Shown here: one piece after another, positions 1-10,486 of the stretch
How positions within the stretch are numbered: position 1 is the stretch's first letter
How the letters are laid out: each line of letters begins with the position of its first letter
NCBI GenBank assembly: GCA_950097015.1
Contig: CATNEN010000003.1
Location: 15,996,001 to 16,060,000 of the forward strand
DNA: 64,000 bases
From: Macrostomum hystrix
Taxonomy: Eukaryota; Animalia; Platyhelminthes
Direction: 5' to 3'
Translations under genes and position numbers: made by a program
The notes under the pieces: model-generated
Told to the model about the DNA's origin: nothing
What the model saw: only the letters and a program-made list of their open reading frames with translations
Database searches by the model: none

Positions 1-648
1 GCCATCGCGTCTGGATCCCATCCAGCAGCCATCAAGTCTAGCGAACAAACAGGCTCCCAGTGGTCTCGTGTGCCATGGAACCGTCCGCAAAGGAGCGGAG
101 GGTTACACGGTCATAATAAGCCAAAGATAATCGATTAAGCTTCCTCACAAGTCGACCATCCAGCGTGGCCTGCATCAGCTGACCATCCTCAGGAGAGGAA
201 GGGCCCTCTATTACGGCACCAAAGCGCATCGCATCCGGCTCGGAGCTCGGAGTGTCCAAGGCTGTACGCAATGCGGAGTCAGCTCCGCGATATCGCCGAC
301 CAGACCGCAGCGCTAGGTCGGGTCTGGTCCAACGCGAACTCAGCGAGGCGAAGGTTCTTCGGGATCACCTCCGCAGCAGCAAAAACACAACCCATGCCGA
401 AGAGGTCGCCCGAAACTGGCTTGATGATCCTCATCACCAGATGGTGGCCCGCGCTCGGTAACGCCCCGGGTCGTCCGCTGAAGTTTTGGGCGAAGGTCTG
501 GAGGATTGCGCGCAGTCGGAGGTCGGAGGGGGTGGTGAAAATCACAAACCGGGGCTTATCTTCACCCTGGACTTCCAGAGGTAAGCCCCAGAAAATCCCC
601 TCTGGTTACCATTGTTTAGTTTCTACCTTGTATAGGGAACATTGTATA

Positions 649-1008
649 GTTAGCACCTTATTTTTCAGTTAGCACCTTATTTTTCAGTTAGCACCTTATT
701 TTCAGTTAGCACCTTATTTTTCAGTTAGCACCTTATTTTTCAGTTAGCACCTTATTTTTCAGTTAGCACCTTATTTTTCAGTTAGCACCTTATTTTTCAG
801 TTAGCACCTTATTTTTCAGTTAGCACCTTATTTTTCAGTTAGCACCTTATTTTTCAGTTAGCACCTTATTTTTCAGTTAGCACCATATTTTTCAGTTAGC
901 ACCTTATTTTTCAGTTAGCACCTTATTTTTCAGTTAGCACCTTATTTTTCAGTTAGCACCTTATTTTTCAGTTAGCACCTTATTTTTCAGTTAGCACCTT
1001 ATTTTTCA
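649..1008 (+). repeat. 19-bp tandem array GTTAGCACCTTATTTTTCA x19, inside the RTE TSD
   Basis: Direct reading: 360 bp, one unit is 18 nt, one has a substitution. Confidence 0.97.
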
Positions 1009-1110
1009 CTCCGGCTGGAGTAAAAGTAAGGAGGCCACCGTCCGGCACCGGCGCGGGCCACGGGCTAACGGAGTCGCCCTCCTCTGGAGCGTGCGGCTAC
1101 TAAGATGGCC
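990..1110 (+). ncRNA. Candidate HDV-like self-cleaving ribozyme at the RTE 5' end (atypical long L3)
   Basis: P1 GTTAGC(990-995)/GCTAAC(1064-1069) followed by GG; J1/2 hairpin; P2 GGCCA/TGGCC; P3 CCG/CGG; L3 starts TCC; P4 AGTCGC/GCGGCT; J4/2 ACTAA. Confidence 0.55.
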
Positions 1111-4100
1111 ACCCACCGCGGAAGGCGGAGCGCTGCTGCTGCTGAACGTCGCCAGCAGCGGTTCAATGCTCGACGCAAAGAGCTGCGGGCTCTCGCCCGC
1201 CTCCGCCACGTAGACCGCCACAAGGACTCGCGGCTTGCCCAGCCGGAGCCTCGAGTGCTGGTAACTCCACCGCCAGCACCCAGCACTACACACCTGCCTG
1301 ATATTGACAACAACGCCAGCGCCAACAGCCCCAGACAGCAGCCTCAGGGTCGGAAACTGCTAAACTCTCTGTCCATTGCCACATTCAATGCACGCACTCT
1401 CTCTAACCAATGGAGGCTCCTTGAGCTTGCTAAAGCAGCAATCGATCTGTCTATCTCCATCGTAGCTATTCAAGAACACCGCAGGACTGCCAACCTGGAC
1501 ATCGACCTTGGCAATGGCTGGTTTTTCAAAGCAGCTGCAGCTTCTGACCAGGGCATCGGCGGAATCGGTTTCCTGCTCTCGCCGCTGGCAAACCGCTCTC
1601 TGCTAAGCCTCAGCTTTATCTCTGATCGCATCGGTCATGCATCGTTTGCCATCTCAGATCGCCGGCTTCATGTCCTCTGTGTCTACGCCCCCACTGCCCC
1701 GGCTACCACTGTGGATGCCACCACCACCCTTCAATTCTACGATCAACTGGGCCACCAGCTAGACCACCTCGCCTCCAGGGACCTCTACTTCATCGCCGGC
1801 GACTTCAACGCGCCTCTCCCGGTGGACGGCCAATTGGTGAGAAACAGGTGCGGCACTCCAAATGCCAACACTCCACACCTGTCAACTTTCATGGCTTCTC
1901 GCAATTTGCTCGCTGCAAACGGCTATTTCCGCCAGCGCCTCAACGCTCTTCCGACTTTCCGGGGTCCAAACAGCCGTACGACGAGGCTAGACTGGATCCT
2001 GTGTCCAGCCGCCTCCCGCTCCCGACTCCGCGCTGCTCAGAGTATCGTGCTGCACTGCGTCCCCTCCGACCATGCCCTCGTCTGCTGCCACCTCGATCAT
2101 CGGTGGCAGAGGTTCCGTCGCCCCACGGCACCACCCTACTGGGCTGCCCTGGCCCGGGCTGAGACTAAAGCAGCCTTCCTTAACCAACTGTTTGCCGCCG
2201 GGCTCACTCTAAACAGCAGCTTCAACGAGCTTGCGACGGCAGTAGCCTCTGCTGCCACTGCATCGCTACCCAAACGCCAGCCTCGCCAAGCAAGCGCCCG
2301 CTGGGCCTCCGACCCCAGCGTCACTCGAGCCCGCAGCCTCGTCCAAGCAACGGTTGCCAGACACGGCGCCGGTAGCGAGCAGGCAACAGCGGCGACCGAC
2401 ACCCTGAGAGACGCTCACCGCATCGCTGCCGAGCTCGCAACCCAAGAGGCGCTCATCGAGATCCAGGCGGCCACGGACAACTGTCGCCCTGCGGCCGCCT
2501 GGCGGGCCATCAACCGTCTGACGGGCCGTCGCGCCACACCGAAGGCTATCATCCCTGCCAACTCCCAAGAAGAGCGCAAGCAGCTGATGGCTGACCATTT
2601 CGAAGGCGTCCTCAACGCCGACGCGCCCGACCCCCTGCTCCCGCCTCTTGAAGGCCTCTTGCCCATTCCCGACGGCACCTTCGACTGCGGTCCTATCCGC
2701 TCTGCAGAGGTGAAGAAAGCCCTGCAGACAATGAGATCCGATGCCGCCGCAGGAGTTGACGAAATCCCGCCGCGCGTCCTCAAGCTTCCCGAGCTGCTGC
2801 CTGTTCTCACGGGTATTCTCAACCGCTCCTGCCCCTTGGGAGGTGATCCCACAGCCCGAGCTCCGGCTCTTTGGAGGATATCCAAGATCATCGCCATACC
2901 CAAGAAAGGAAGCTCCAGCAGCCTCGACAACCTCCGCGGCATTGCCCTCGAGTGCACGCTGGTTAAAGTCCTGAACATCGTCCTGCGCAACCGCCTGCTG
3001 CCCACTATCAATCAGCGGCTTCTTCACCTCCAGAGTGGTTTCCGCCCTGGCCGCTCGACCTCTGAGCAGGTGGCTGCCATCCGCTGCGTGGTCGAAGCCT
3101 GCAGGACGCGACTGATGTCGGCATCCATCGTTTTCGTCGACTTCCTCAAAGCGTTTGATTCCATCAGCAGGCCGGCCATTGCATGGCTGCTCAAAGAACA
3201 CGGCGTTCCACAATTGCTCATCCAAGCAGTGATGGACCTTTACACCGACTCCAGTGCTTTTATTCAGACTGCAGACGGGCCCACGACTGAGTTCGCTACC
3301 ACCTCTGGTGTTCATTCAAGGAGACACCCTTTCTCCTTTTCTTTTCGTGATGGTCATGGACTTCGTTCTCAGGCGCGCCCTACGCGACGACGATGGCTTC
3401 ATGGTCACCCGCAGGCGTAGTGCCCGGCTCCCCTGCGTCCGCCTGACCTGCCTCGCCTATGCCGACGACGTCGCCCTGACCTGCTGTGACCCTGACGCAG
3501 CCCTGAGAGCGGTCTGTCGCCTGGCCGAGGAAGGCAGGAGAGTCGGGCTTCACATTAACTACAACAAGACGGAGGTCCTGCACATGGGCACAGCAACCGC
3601 CCCACCACTGCAACTTCCAGACGGCAATGTCATCAACACCTGCAAGGACTTTAAGTACTTAGGTGTGCAAATTTTGGACGCCAACGCCATCATCGAATAC
3701 CGCAAGCAACAGGCCTGGCGCGCCCTCCACCTTCTGCGTACCATCTTTGACTCTACTGCCTCCGACGTCCTGAAGATCGGCCTCTTCCGCTCAGCTGTCG
3801 AATCCGTCCTTGCATATGGCCTCGAAGCAGTGCCGATGACGCCTACCCGTGAGGCTGCCCTGGAGGCGTCTCACCGACACCTGCTGAGGTCGGCGCTTGG
3901 CATCCGCTACCCTGAGACTGCGAGCAACGCCGAGCTGACCGCGAGAGCCCGTGTGCCCTCCCTCGCTCGTTCCCTGCAAAGGCGTCGGCAAATGCTGGCC
4001 GGCCACTGCCTGCGGGCTCATGCGAGGGGTGCGGGCCCGCCGCTCGCGACCCTTCTGCTCAACCCGCCCAGTGAAGGCCTTCGACGTGGACAGGGCCGTC

Positions 4101-4219
4101 GCGTGACTCTACTTGATTGCCTTTTAACTGACTTGCAGAGTCTTGGCTTCTCCCCTCAGGCTGCTGCCAGGGCTGACTCCCGCGTTTTTCGGCAGCGTGT
4201 GTTCGCTGCAGTTTTCTAA
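1105..4219 (+). CDS. RTE endonuclease-reverse transcriptase, split by a +1 frameshift at ~3311
   Basis: APE motifs ATFNARTL, IQEH, GDFNA, LDWI, SDH; RT motifs QSGFRPGRST, FVDFLKAFDSI, GVIQGDTLSP (restored by removing one T in GGTGTTCATTCAAGGA), YADD at 3458-3469. Confidence 0.92.
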
Positions 4220-4400
4220 CCTCCGCAGCGTCCGTTATTATTATTATTATAGGGAACATGCCGGGGATGCCAGCCCTGTGCCTTGGTGCGTGCTTGATGT
4301 CTACCTATTGTCTGTTCCATGAGCAAATGCATGCAAAGATGCTCTAGAAAATGAAAACGAGCCGCCGCATCCTATTTTCTTTAAGTCTGTAGTTCAGTAG

Positions 4401-5208
4401 TCCTGCTACGATTCCGGCTTCGATTCTCGCTACGATTCCTGCTACGATTCCTGCTTCGATTCTTGCTGTCATTCCTGCTTCGACTCTAACTACGATTCCT
4501 GTTCGACTCTATCTACGATTCCTGCTTTGATTCTTGCTACGATTCCTGCTTCAACTCTATCTACGATTCCAGATTCGACTCTAGTACGATTCCTGCTTCG
4601 ATTCTTGCTACGATTCCTGCTTCGACTCAATCTACGATTCCTGCTTCGATTCTTGCTACGATTCCTGCTTCAACTCTATCTACGATTCCAGATTCGACTC
4701 TAGTACGATTCCTGCTTCGATTCTTGCTACGATTCCTGCTTCGACTCAATCTACGATTCCAGCTTCGATTCTATCTACGATTCCTGCTTCGTCTCTAGCT
4801 ACGATTCCTGCTTCGATTCTTGCTACGATTCCCGCTTCGACTCTATCTACGATTCCTGCTTCGATTCTTGCTGCCATTCCTGCTTCGACTCTATCTACGA
4901 TTCCTGCTTCGACTCTAGCTACGATTCCCGCTTCGACTCTATCTACGATTCCTGCTTCGACTCTATCCACGATTCCTGCTTCGACTCTATCTACGATTCC
5001 AGCTTCGATTCTTGCTACGATTCCTGCTTCGACTCCATCTACGATTCCAGCTTCGACTCTATCTACGATTCCTGCTTCGATTCTTGCTGCGATTCCTGCT
5101 TCGACTCTAGCTACGATTCCTGCTTTGACTCTAGTACGATTCCTATCGACTCTATCTACGATTCCAGCTTCGACTCTAGTACGATTCCTGCTTCGATTCT
5201 CGCTACGA
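4401..5208. repeat. 24-bp minisatellite (CTACGATTCCTGCTTCGACTCTAT-type)
   Basis: Direct reading, ~33 variable units. Confidence 0.95.
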
Positions 5209-5902
5209 TGAAGAAGAATCAAAATATCCATAGATACAGACTTAGTGTTGATTCATCATTTCTGAATTTTTCTTCCAAGACAGGCAATGATTAGGTCGGA
5301 TTAACCGAAAGTATTTAATACGGAAGGCAGTGGATTAACCCTCTCAGCTGACCGTCCCTAGAGAATGGGCGTCAGAGCAAATGAACGTGTAGAATTCTGG
5401 AATAACTTTTCTTTTCTCTCGTCGACTAATGCTTAAAAGCCGGTAAGAAATGGCTAAGTGCAGTAGAACTCGTTGCTATAGTTGTGGTTACTTAAGAGTG
5501 TTGACATTGCAGCATCAGTCATATTGGGAATTTTTTAGGATTAGATTGAGCGAAATAAATTTCTTAATGCAGACACAATTTCATACAGAATTTTATATAA
5601 CTAAACTTGACGACAATGAGGTAGTCAAACATTAAGTCAGTGAGTGTGATATCTGGTCGTTAGACTACACTATATTTCACCTGGGGAAAGACGACGTGAG
5701 TATTTCAAATAACCGCTGCCTAACTTCGCGATTACCAAACAAAATGTCCGATTTTCGCGAAAGTCGTCCATATGGTTCAAAATATTCCGCCCTTTACGAA
5801 CAATTTACTTTCAGAGCCGTCCGACGTCAGCATCGTCTAGATATTCAGCAATTCTTGTCGAATAACCTAGTGGCAAGGGCAAGTGATATTGTTCTGTATG
5901 AA

Positions 5903-6750
5903 CATAGGAACAGGAGAGAATCTAGAAATAGGAACATGTGAGAATCTAGAAATAGGAACAGGTGATAATCTAGAAATAGGAACAGGTGAGAATCTAGAAA
6001 TAGGAACAGGAGGGAATTTTGAAATAGGAACAGGTGAGAATCTAGAAATAGGAACAGGAGGGAATCTAGAAATAGGAACAGCAGAGCATTTTGAAATAGG
6101 AACAGGTGAGAATCTAGAAATAGGAACAGGTGATAATCTAGAAATAGGAACAGGTGAGAATCTAGAAATAGGAACAGGAGGGAATCTAGAAATAGGAACA
6201 GGTGAGAATCTAGAAATAGGAACAGGTAATAATCTAGAAATAGGAACAGGTGAGAATCTAGAAATAGGAACAGGAGGGAATCTAGAAATAGGAACAGGAG
6301 GGAATCTAGAAATAGGAACAGGTGATAATCTAGAAATATGAACAGGTGAGAATCTAGAAATAGGAACAGGAGGGAATCTAGAAATAGGAACAGGTGAGAA
6401 TCTAGAAATAGGAACAGGTGAAAATCTAGAAAAGGACCAGGTAAGAATCTAGATACAGGAACAGGTGAGAATCTAGAAATAGGAACAGGAGAGAATCTAG
6501 AAATAGGAACAGGTGAGAATCTAGAAATAGGAACAGGTGAGAATCTAGAAATAGGAACTGGTGAGAATCCAGAAATAGGAACAGGTGAGAATCTAGAAAT
6601 AGGAACTGGTGAGAATCTAGAAATAGGAACAGGTGAGAATCTAGAAATAGGAACAGGTGATAATCTAGAAATAGGAACAGGTGATAATCTAGAAATAGGA
6701 ACAGGTGAGAATCTAGAGATTGGAACTGGTAAGAATCTAGATATAGGAGC
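5903..6750. repeat. 24-bp minisatellite (AATCTAGAAATAGGAACAGGTGAG-type)
   Basis: Direct reading, ~35 units. Confidence 0.95.
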
Positions 6751-7954
6751 AATACTCGTATTTCTGGCTGAACTGACTTCTAGTAACTTGATCTGTTGCC
6801 TGTTTGCGAAGCATATATATTTATTTTAGTCCTTCAAAAATGATAGGCAAGGTGGATGAAGCTTTCGAACCAAGCATTCAGATTGATGTCCGCACACACC
6901 GTACAACATGGTGTGGCTGTCTTCAGTACTAAAAATCATCCTAGGCCATCTGATCAAGGCTGCGCAGGTAAAGAATCAATTCAGCAATGCACTTTTACAG
7001 ATAGCGGGAGAATCGGAGGAACTATAGTTAGGTGGCAGCATGAGGCTGGCTTATCTGTATCCCAAACCAGCTGTAGGTTTGTATATTTTCTTAAGGGGTC
7101 ACGACGCAGAACACAAATATAAAAGAGATCGAAATCTTGTTTTATGCTTAGTAACGCTAGAAATTTTGGGATTTTGGGATTCGGTTTGGGAGCTATCGTG
7201 AAATGTCCTCAGCAACCTCAGCACATTTCAAAGGACGGAGCGAACCGGAAAAGTGTTGATTTGGAACCATTCATTTGGAGTTTGTACTTTTTCAGATTCT
7301 AAGAAATGTCTTTGAATTAGCATGGCAACCGCTGAGCAGAAATGCCATTTCCTTGGTTCGCTAATTCCGCAACTTTTGATACATTGACTGGGCCCAAAAT
7401 TCGCTGATTGCCCAGCAAGGGAAATGGCCTTCGTAAAGCCTTGATGCCAATGGCAAGAAAGTTCTTGGAAAACTGTTCCACCCAATGAGAAACTTATTTG
7501 AGCTTCTCGAACTGTTAAGCCAATCGACTAAGCAATTTGAGAATCTCTAATTTCCATTCGTCTTTTTAACGAAACATGATAGTTGTCATGGAGACCGGTG
7601 GATATGAAATTTATTTGTTCATTTACATTCTGATTAGATTAGATCTAATTTCAGTTGAAAATTAATTAGGATCGTCAACTATTACCGACATTTTATCGAT
7701 AGAAAAGGCAAAAACTTTCTTCTGAATATTTGCAATCCGATTTTTAAAGGATATATAAACAGTCAATTAAATATTACAGCTTGATAACTTTTTTTATTAA
7801 ACACAGACAGATGTCAAAAATGCGTTGCAAACATACCTGTGCCTGAAAATAAGTTATAACACATGGTCATACTGAGTAGCTGAGTAATTTTACAACTAGA
7901 TTCAGCTAGATTGCAGTGTGAGAAGTGTACAATAATCCCACATCCGGTTTTCAA

Positions 7955-9832: not shown

Positions 9833-10486
9833 ATGGCGACGATGAAGTTGGTTATTGTTGGCGTATTGCTTGCAATTGCAACCACGACTGCTGCGGGTGA
9901 AATCACAACTGCTGCGGGTGAAACCACGACTGCTGCGGGTGAAATCACGACTGCTGCGGGTGAAACCACGACTGCTGCGGGTGAAATCACGACTGCTGCG
10001 GGTGAAATCACGACTGCTGCGGGTGAAATCACAACTGCTGCGGGTGAAATCACAACTGCTGCGGGTGAAATCACGACTGCTGCGGGTGAAATCACAACTG
10101 CTGCGGGTGAAACCACGACTGCTGTGGGTTCAACCACGACTGCTGCGGGTTCAACCACGACTGCTGCGGGTGCAACCACGACTGCTGTGGGTGAAATCAC
10201 AACTGCTACGGGTGCAACCACGACTGCTTCGGGTGCAGGCACGACTGCTGCTGGTGCAACCTCGACCTTTGCAAGTGAAATCACGACTGCTGCTTTTGCA
10301 GCTACGAAATCTTCGGGTGCAGCCACAGCAGTCGTGGAGGCATGTGCAGGCACGAATGCTTCGGCCTTGGCTGGCAACGCGACCAAAACAACTGAACATA
10401 AAAAACTATGCTTCGCGCCAGAGTTCGCCGTTCGGATCCGTACTGCTGGGCTGCGCGATGCTGCCGCCTGCGCTGACAATTTTTGA
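9833..10486 (+). CDS. Secreted Thr/Ala-rich mucin-like protein with TTAAGE(I/T) heptad repeats
   Basis: Signal-peptide-like MKLVIVGVLLAIA; 21-bp coding repeat; non-repetitive Cys-containing C-terminus; AATAAA overlapping the TGA stop. Confidence 0.7.
   Translation: MATMKLVIVGVLLAIATTTAAGEITTAAGETTTAAGEITTAAGETTTAAGEITTAAGEITTAAGEITTAAGEITTAAGEITTAAGEITTAAGETTTAVGSTTTAAGSTTTAAGATTTAVGEITTATGATTTASGAGTTAAGATSTFASEITTAAFAATKSSGAATAVVEACAGTNASALAGNATKTTEHKKLCFAPEFAVRIRTAGLRDAAACADNF

Follow-up and report, generated by a model that had tools for sequence, protein, structure and literature searches.

How does a retrotransposon come to carry, at its 5′ end and within its own insertion, a nearly perfect minisatellite built from its own first nucleotides? 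The question is raised by a stretch of 64,000 nucleotides from the flatworm Macrostomum hystrix (contig CATNEN010000003.1, positions 15,996,001 to 16,060,000), here called the window, in whose coordinates we give positions unless another locus is named. Its first 4.3 kb are occupied by a single long interspersed nuclear element (LINE) which, judged from its sequence, appears to be of RTE type: it has an endonuclease and a reverse transcriptase (RT) in a single open reading frame (ORF), a length of about 3.3-3.6 kb, target-site duplications of 9-12 bp and a (TTA)n tail. Between the upstream duplication and the 5′ untranslated region (UTR) of this element stand 19 tandem units of 19 bp. Our tentative answer, to which we give a probability of roughly 45%, is that the number of units is largely set during retrotransposition, through RT-level re-copying of a terminal module.

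The target duplication, a 12-mer identical at both of its sites, encloses the array, and the array therefore lies inside the insertion, as the first-pass annotation of this DNA had held. That annotation also had the array begin exactly at G1, the nucleotide before which a ribozyme of the hepatitis delta virus (HDV) type would cleave; the phase is upheld, with the correction that array and duplication are not adjacent, TGTAT and a further A preceding G649. The sequence TGTATAG at this junction repeats target sequence 628-634, and the stretch 643-648 is junction filler. Tandem Repeats Finder (TRF) places the array, of period 19 bp, between 648 and 1008 and reports 19.1 copies with 98% matches, and a unit-by-unit walk counts 19 units, one of them of 18 nt and one with a T>A change.

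A search of the 220-Mb assembly for the 19-mer, in its exact and one-mismatch forms, finds it nowhere but at the 5′ ends of three elements, all copies of the present family (family A), which have 19, 4.4 and 4 units and each its own target duplication. Six two-mismatch matches elsewhere look like chance, compared with none on the forward and two on the reverse strand for a control pattern, and they were rejected. The copy on contig C39, whose ORF of 1033 aa is unbroken, has a partial unit of 8 nt and 4 units within its own duplication, AGGTGAGGAAA. More telling is the copy on contig C29 (L037, G000:C29:5633500-5640732, at 3517-6823), a twin-priming 5′ inversion flanked by the duplication AAAGATCTT. 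There the reverse complement of element positions ~933-3226 is followed by 3206-4211 in direct orientation, the two arms overlapping by 18-21 nt (element positions 3206-3226), and 17 bp are deleted from the 3′ UTR. Its 4 units are found at the inner junction, where the complementary DNA (cDNA) ends with the exact complement of G1 (...GGTGCTAAC) and 5 filler bases, so that the array must already have been on the cDNA at integration. There is no paralogous empty site, the 5′ flank 380-642 being single-copy in the genome, and a DNA run of a related sample (X2) has the filled junction as in the window; run X1 shares the insertion too.

The same design recurs in other families. A protein search of the genome revealed many RTE families, five of which (B-F, at 31-37% amino-acid identity to family A) have 17-18-bp units of their own in 1-32 copies. 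The units per copy are 29, 11, 9 plus a 9-nt partial, 6, 5, 4 and 2.6 in family B; 27, 14, 2 and 1 in family C; 15 and 1 in family D; 18 and 3 in family E; and 32, 19, 14, 4 and 1 in family F. In all four family B copies that were checked the array lies inside the target duplications, and very young copies, with 0.04-0.25% private divergence, bear up to 29 units. That insertions which arose independently in six or more RTE families show this design, with 1-32 copies, means that the array travels with the element rather than having grown locally by chance; it is part of what is retrotransposed. The family-wide comparison of 5′ junctions that the first-pass annotation had suggested thus gave the outcome that it had named as support for reiterative RT, with independent insertions of families A-F bearing variable numbers of units that are nearly always phased on G1.

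These copies bear directly on the simplest alternative, namely that a single unit at this locus was multiplied after insertion by slippage alone. The genome is rich in minisatellites, and changes of length would leave a perfect array without trace, yet we consider this explanation very improbable, and the first-pass annotation, which had listed ordinary slippage as its alternative, is not followed here as far as a sole cause is concerned. Multi-unit arrays are present at 20 of the 24 element 5′ ends in the six families, very young copies included, and a single unit at only 4; one array sits at an inner inversion junction; and the left edge of the array always coincides with the terminus of the element, which a first slippage duplication would not respect. 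Moreover, the private changes of the window array match those of the body: two changes in 361 bp (0.55%) compared with a private divergence of 0.59%, which implies that the array has had about its present length since insertion.

What, then, is the unit? On the accepted reading of its sequence, the 5′ UTR of the window element is a putative HDV-like self-cleaving ribozyme, with G990 as the predicted G1 and predicted cleavage 5′ of it. As the first-pass annotation had noticed, the last unit runs on into the 5′ UTR and pairs with it, both through GTTAGC and through a hairpin; the 15 pairs of this hairpin, called P1.2, leave one C bulged. The proposed helices and the other features of the element are collected in Table 1.

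Table 1. Features of the RTE-type insertion, in positions of the window.
Feature	Position	Strand	Remark
5′ target-site duplication TATAGGGAACAT	631-642	+	Same 12-mer again at 4248-4259
Junction filler TGTAT (643-647) and A (648)	643-648	+	The A matches the final base of a unit
19 tandem units of GTTAGCACCTTATTTTTCA	649-1008	+	TRF, unit walk, genome-wide 19-mer search
P1 5′ strand of the last unit, GTTAGC	990-995	+	Pairs at every base with GCTAAC 1064-1069
P1.2 clamp hairpin in J1/2, 15 bp, loop GGCT	997-1031 (arms 997-1012 and 1017-1031)	+	Predicted -16.2 kcal/mol
P2 5′ strand GGCCA	1033-1037	+	Pairs with 1106-1110; both sides change in relatives
P3	1038-1041 with 1060-1063	+	100% paired in 6 sequences, 2 compensatory pairs
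Expanded L3, 18 nt	1042-1059	+	Enclosed by P3
P1.1, CC with GG	1042-1043 with 1070-1071 (C1042-G1071, C1043-G1070)	+	Invariant
P1 3′ strand GCTAAC, then P1.1 GG	1064-1071	+	
P4: GTCGC with GCGGC, inner CTCC with GGAG	1073-1097	+	
J4/2 TACTAAGA, then P2 3′ strand TGGCC	1098-1110	+	A-C-T-A-A conserved in relatives
RTE ORF (endonuclease and RT)	1105-4219	+	Split by a private 1-nt insertion near 3314
3′ UTR end and (TTA)n tail	4220-4247	+	Like the tail in other copies and in family B
3′ target-site duplication TATAGGGAACAT	4248-4259	+	Directly 3′ of the (TTA)n tail

That these pairings are fortuitous, or that they have a different function, for example in the control of translation, has to be considered, as Rfam gives no match for the window UTR and L3 is atypically long. 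A scan of window positions 500-1400 yielded no ribozyme match, and none of HDV type even at E 10, with models for HDV ribozymes that leave out the pseudoknot and long insertions. Against this stand the changes on both sides of P1, P2 and P3 seen in genome relatives with a homologous UTR (L043, L045, L004 and L005), and the near-canonical HDV-like core of families B-F (ACC or GCC, TCCTSG..., GGY, the P1 3′ strand, GG), which in family E comes to 27.9 bits against Rfam drz-agam-1, under the gathering score of 37. Across 7 families the start hexamer and the hexamer before the GG anchor form 36 of 42 possible pairs, the best of 5040 strand permutations. In an alignment limited to six sequences, made with MAFFT and with some gaps misplaced, 83% of the cells of the pseudoknotted fold are paired, compared with 30-50% in slid controls. 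We therefore regard a UTR that holds no ribozyme as very improbable.

Further details of the predicted ribozyme are best read by analogy with known members of the class. C1100 is a candidate for the catalytic C, lying in a motif that reads A-C-T-A-A in 5 of 6 sequences of the A group and CCAA or CAAA in families B-F. The start codon (1105-1107) shares A1105 with the end of J4/2 and its other two bases with the beginning of the P2 3′ strand; the site is thus the P2 3′ strand in family A, while it is the P2 5′ strand in families B, D and E and lies inside the L3 insertion in family C (from L056 and L054), and no ATG stands upstream of the ribozyme core in family F (L073-L077). A comparable hairpin in J1/2 is found in all families. 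In several otherwise diverged families its 5′ arm keeps ATTTGCA(T), the octamer motif, with the complement in the 3′ arm (L043 1388-1430, L045 1394-1440, and families B, E and F); this may reflect a constraint besides pairing, for example a protein-binding or promoter site.

The repeat unit maps onto this fold in a consistent way. In every family it comprises the P1 5′ strand and most of the P1.2 5′ arm, spanning from G1 to just short of the loop-proximal pairs of the J1/2 hairpin; it has the form G...CA, and the stem is carried on by a C that comes after the last unit. The unit is thus the substrate module of the predicted ribozyme, its P1 5′ strand placing cleavage before its first G, and the earlier remark that every unit offers such a strand proved correct. 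Since the P1.2 5′ arm is part of the tandem repeat, no unit but the last can complete the clamp: the predicted energy of P1.2 is -16.2 kcal/mol with this unit, compared with -3.7 and -3.2 kcal/mol with upstream units.

The ends of the elements follow the predicted cleavage site closely. Ten of the 24 5′ ends begin with an A before G1, eight at G1 itself, four at base 2 and two inside a unit, so that 22 of the 24 are found between -1 and +2 relative to the predicted cleavage G (P ~5e-15). The additional A precedes G1 in 10 of 14 G1-phased arrays and in none of the four single-unit copies (Fisher P = 0.02).

How could a defined end give rise to many units? We envisage that the ribozyme would define the RNA 5′ end, with a strong preference for the last unit, and that a polymerase at this terminus, either the RT on RNA or the enzyme of second-strand synthesis, would copy the terminal module again, either realigning on homologous units or jumping between templates. 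The array would grow outward from its 5′ side; the next transcript would be trimmed again by the ribozyme, the array would be rebuilt in every cycle, and DNA-level slippage might add changes afterwards. A stable P1.2 accelerates such ribozymes about 1000-fold (PMC4908430); taken together with a clamp that forms only with the last unit, this leads one to expect a processed RNA with a single unit, yet only 4 of the 24 ends are single-unit. The R2 protein, for its part, is known to lengthen cDNA ends in cells by using an additional template (PMC11331408).

Several features of the arrays agree with such re-copying. The 32 units in the array of L073 differ from one another solely in whether they have the junction A, and in three families units lacking this A stand outermost, on the 5′ side of their arrays, suggesting junctions formed afresh and outward growth of the array. 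The partial outer units that start two arrays (8 nt and 9 nt) and the A before G1 would fit an aborted extra round. Two family C copies that are 1.2% apart have 27 units and 1 unit. In its strongest form, the proposal is that the LINE RT or second-strand synthesis reiterates the ribozyme-defined first 17-19 nt in the manner of telomerase, so that the insertion is born with a perfect minisatellite; we think this possible, though we would not yet favour it over its negation.

The main competitor is that the array is encoded in the template: a source array would be transcribed, daughters would inherit no more units than the source, and array length would be maintained through replication slippage or unequal exchange in a minisatellite-rich genome. 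The RNA 5′ end would then arise by initiation at the junction between CA and G, or by cleavage at an upstream unit. In the initiation variant each unit would bring an initiator-like CA/G and an A/T-rich box, like a miniature L1 monomer, although these are resemblances only. An A before G1 in 10 of 14 arrays would fit a start at the A of this junction, and single-unit copies without the A would then be the ribozyme-cleaved products. Cleavage at an upstream unit, on the other hand, is disfavoured by about 12 kcal/mol in the formation of P1.2, and the junction-specific loss of A in three families is unexpected from plain copying of DNA. In family B, in addition, five of six arrays have at most 11 units, and the other has 29.

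The RNA libraries speak for a template-encoded array and weigh, with the points of the next paragraph, against re-copying of a terminal module. Three wastewater metatranscriptome libraries contain a collapsed 49-nt set of multi-unit array words, and in one of them the array words reach a depth of 21.4 compared with 9.7 for the adjoining body contig, which begins 11 nt upstream of G990; depth ratios in such contig runs are too uncertain for sizing the array. Words deeper than the body imply that multi-unit RNAs or cleaved leader fragments exist, and the signal could be precursor RNA or a cleaved leader. It comes from RNA and not from carried-over DNA, because coverage of the element is flat from 5′ to 3′ in the RNA libraries, whereas it rises 4- to 10-fold toward the 3′ end in a DNA run. 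In runs X5, X7 and X10, all of them wastewater metatranscriptomes and all compared over 860-4390, the RTE is present at 95-99% identity over the whole length, which means that a close relative of the host lives in wastewater and transcribes this RTE family.

The junctions and the variants within arrays raise further difficulties for re-copying. No microhomology exists between the cDNA end at G1 and the landing site at the last A of a unit; only within arrays is G1 followed by the last A of a unit, and in the last unit a C comes after that A. The units of 16 and 17 nt in L073 are clustered into long runs (6 runs compared with 16 expected, z = -3.9), and L056 holds two pairs of identical variants, a pattern that fits block duplication or copying of the product rather than repeated copying of one RNA unit. 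A variant unit with CCATATT is common to the window and C39 arrays, which speaks for a template-encoded array; its distance from the 3′ end, however, is 7 units in one of them and 4 in the other, so that a simple nested truncation does not account for it. The abundance of tandem repeats in the window (about 15 separate arrays of at least four units, among 45 often overlapping TRF rows) would also suit slippage or unequal exchange, but these other arrays have units only 77-98% alike, resembling birth followed by decay and not constant homogenisation.

Weighing both sides, we consider a template-encoded array a serious but somewhat doubtful explanation. Of the original proposal that the RT repeatedly re-copied the 5′ terminus of its template, the placing of the array within the insertion and its phase on G1 have held up; the naming of the RT as the maker has not fared as well, in view of the lacking microhomology, the repeated variants and the multi-unit words in RNA. 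A mixed model fits best: the RNAs may have one or a few units, their outermost module would be copied again by a polymerase at the terminus, and DNA-level events would follow on older arrays.

The ORF of the window element falls into two pieces (1105-3420 and 3254-4219), and the frame-breaking base near 3314, private to this copy, is absent from all four of the public runs compared, which consist of contigs and were used over the stretch 860-4390. Pfam finds RVT_1 on both ORF pieces, and Exo_endo_phos at 22.5 bits (E 1.1e-4), below the cutoff of 24.5. Relatives at 52-66% are encoded on element-length ENA contigs, and a metagenome scan added one relative, distant and truncated.

Side by side with the arrays at RTE 5′ ends, a number of other tandem repeats deserve mention. 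At L067 (G000:C5:3296027-3299977) an 18-bp array of GTGTTATCCTCAGGTTCA in 10.7 copies, some 290 to 98 nt upstream of the ATG, adjoins the family B array and begins with GTGTTA like the P1 strand of family B; it may be an orphan module array from another RTE. In L033 (G000:C38:18088041-18091059), at about position 1500 on the minus strand, a CAG-rich open stretch has upstream of it two degenerate modules, GTTATCACTTGTCATATTTGTCA and GTTGGCACTTTATTTTTCA, that resemble those of family A. Among the loci L051 and L071 (G000:C7) and L036 (G000:C39), two copies lie within pre-existing minisatellites, where one and the same 20-bp or 30/40-bp array lies on either side, and the target sites of these loci start with TA or TTA, matching the (TTA)n tail. 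Finally, a 5′-truncated RTE of another family adjoins an unrelated array of 30 bp x 20 at L047 (G000:C29:7671924-7675679).

The window itself is dense in minisatellites from 1 to 30700, with periods of 12-59 bp and 77-100% unit identity, and has almost none in its second half. Only the RTE array adjoins a fold-back that pairs with its unit, its duplex standing at z = -2.0 compared with -1.3 to +2.6 for the others. The link to a hairpin is thus specific to RTE 5′ ends and no general trait of the arrays of this genome, and a general hairpin-driven process of minisatellite formation was rejected, as the other arrays of the window have no such fold-back. A scan of the window arrays for exact inverted repeats was too insensitive to serve here and had a coding repeat as its sole outlier. 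A 21-bp array at 9883-10293 is in frame and gives 7-residue repeats, roughly T-T-A-A-G-E-I/T, which suggests a mucin-like coding repeat and not a non-coding minisatellite.

The completion of the 5′ end is the least understood step of target-primed reverse transcription of LINEs. A ribozyme-fixed RNA end combined with dozens of insertions offers a natural read-out of how a polymerase behaves at the 5′ end of its template, the recorded traces being phased arrays, partial outer units and slips at junctions. It also offers a testable origin of minisatellites in a genome that is rich in them: should reiteration by the RT be true, these elements would have minisatellite birth built in and would possibly be the source of some of the short arrays in the genome.

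Among the closest known systems is Perere-3, an RTE-clade element of the flatworm Schistosoma mansoni with a twister-variant ribozyme at its 5′ end (PMC8501958, where the tail of the I factor is cited as well). Both are flatworm RTEs with a 5′ self-cleaving ribozyme, predicted in our case, with target duplications and with a short tandem-repeat tail. The ribozyme of Perere-3 is of another class, and a 5′ tandem array is not reported there. Even if the array is template-encoded, we know of no earlier account of one HDV-like core served by several alternative substrate strands in tandem, or of promoter monomers of 17-19 bp.

The P1.2 domain of drz-Agam-2-1 (PMC4908430) is likewise a stable hairpin; placed between P1 and P2, it should draw the two helices together. 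In the present families, by contrast, its 5′ arm belongs to a tandem repeat, and the full clamp is reserved for the last unit. The mouse L1 5′ UTR carries arrays of ~200-bp monomers that act as promoters, and it has no ribozyme. These too are variable tandem repeats at a LINE 5′ end, the outermost often truncated; the units described here are of 17-19 bp and are phased on a predicted cleavage site.

On the side of the polymerase, RT slippage on terminal repeats produces the (TTA)n, (UAA)n and (TGTAA)n 3′ tails of RTE, the I factor and UnaL2, and telomerase works in a related way. The likeness lies in a short terminal segment of the template being copied repeatedly, the difference in that tail slippage is known at the 3′ end with units of 3-5 nt, whereas here the 5′ end of the template and units of 17-19 nt would be involved. 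Template jumping by the R2 protein has reportedly been described by Bibillo and Eickbush. The "extra template" 5′ junctions of R2 (PMC11331408) similarly show a cDNA end that was continued, before it was joined to the target, on a second template to which it has no homology. What is added there are whole or random template pieces, unlike the phased copies of the first 19 nt seen here.

HDV-like ribozymes are located at the 5′ ends of several non-LTR (long terminal repeat) retrotransposons, among them R2, RTE and L1Tc, and include the drz-Agam families. The ribozyme predicted here shares with them the nested double pseudoknot at the extreme 5′ end, cleavage (predicted in our case) before G1 that sets the end of the RNA, and a start codon in or beside the ribozyme (PMC3774820). 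It departs from them in the L3 of family A, which has grown to 18 nt, and above all in a substrate module that is reiterated 2-32 times upstream of one catalytic core.
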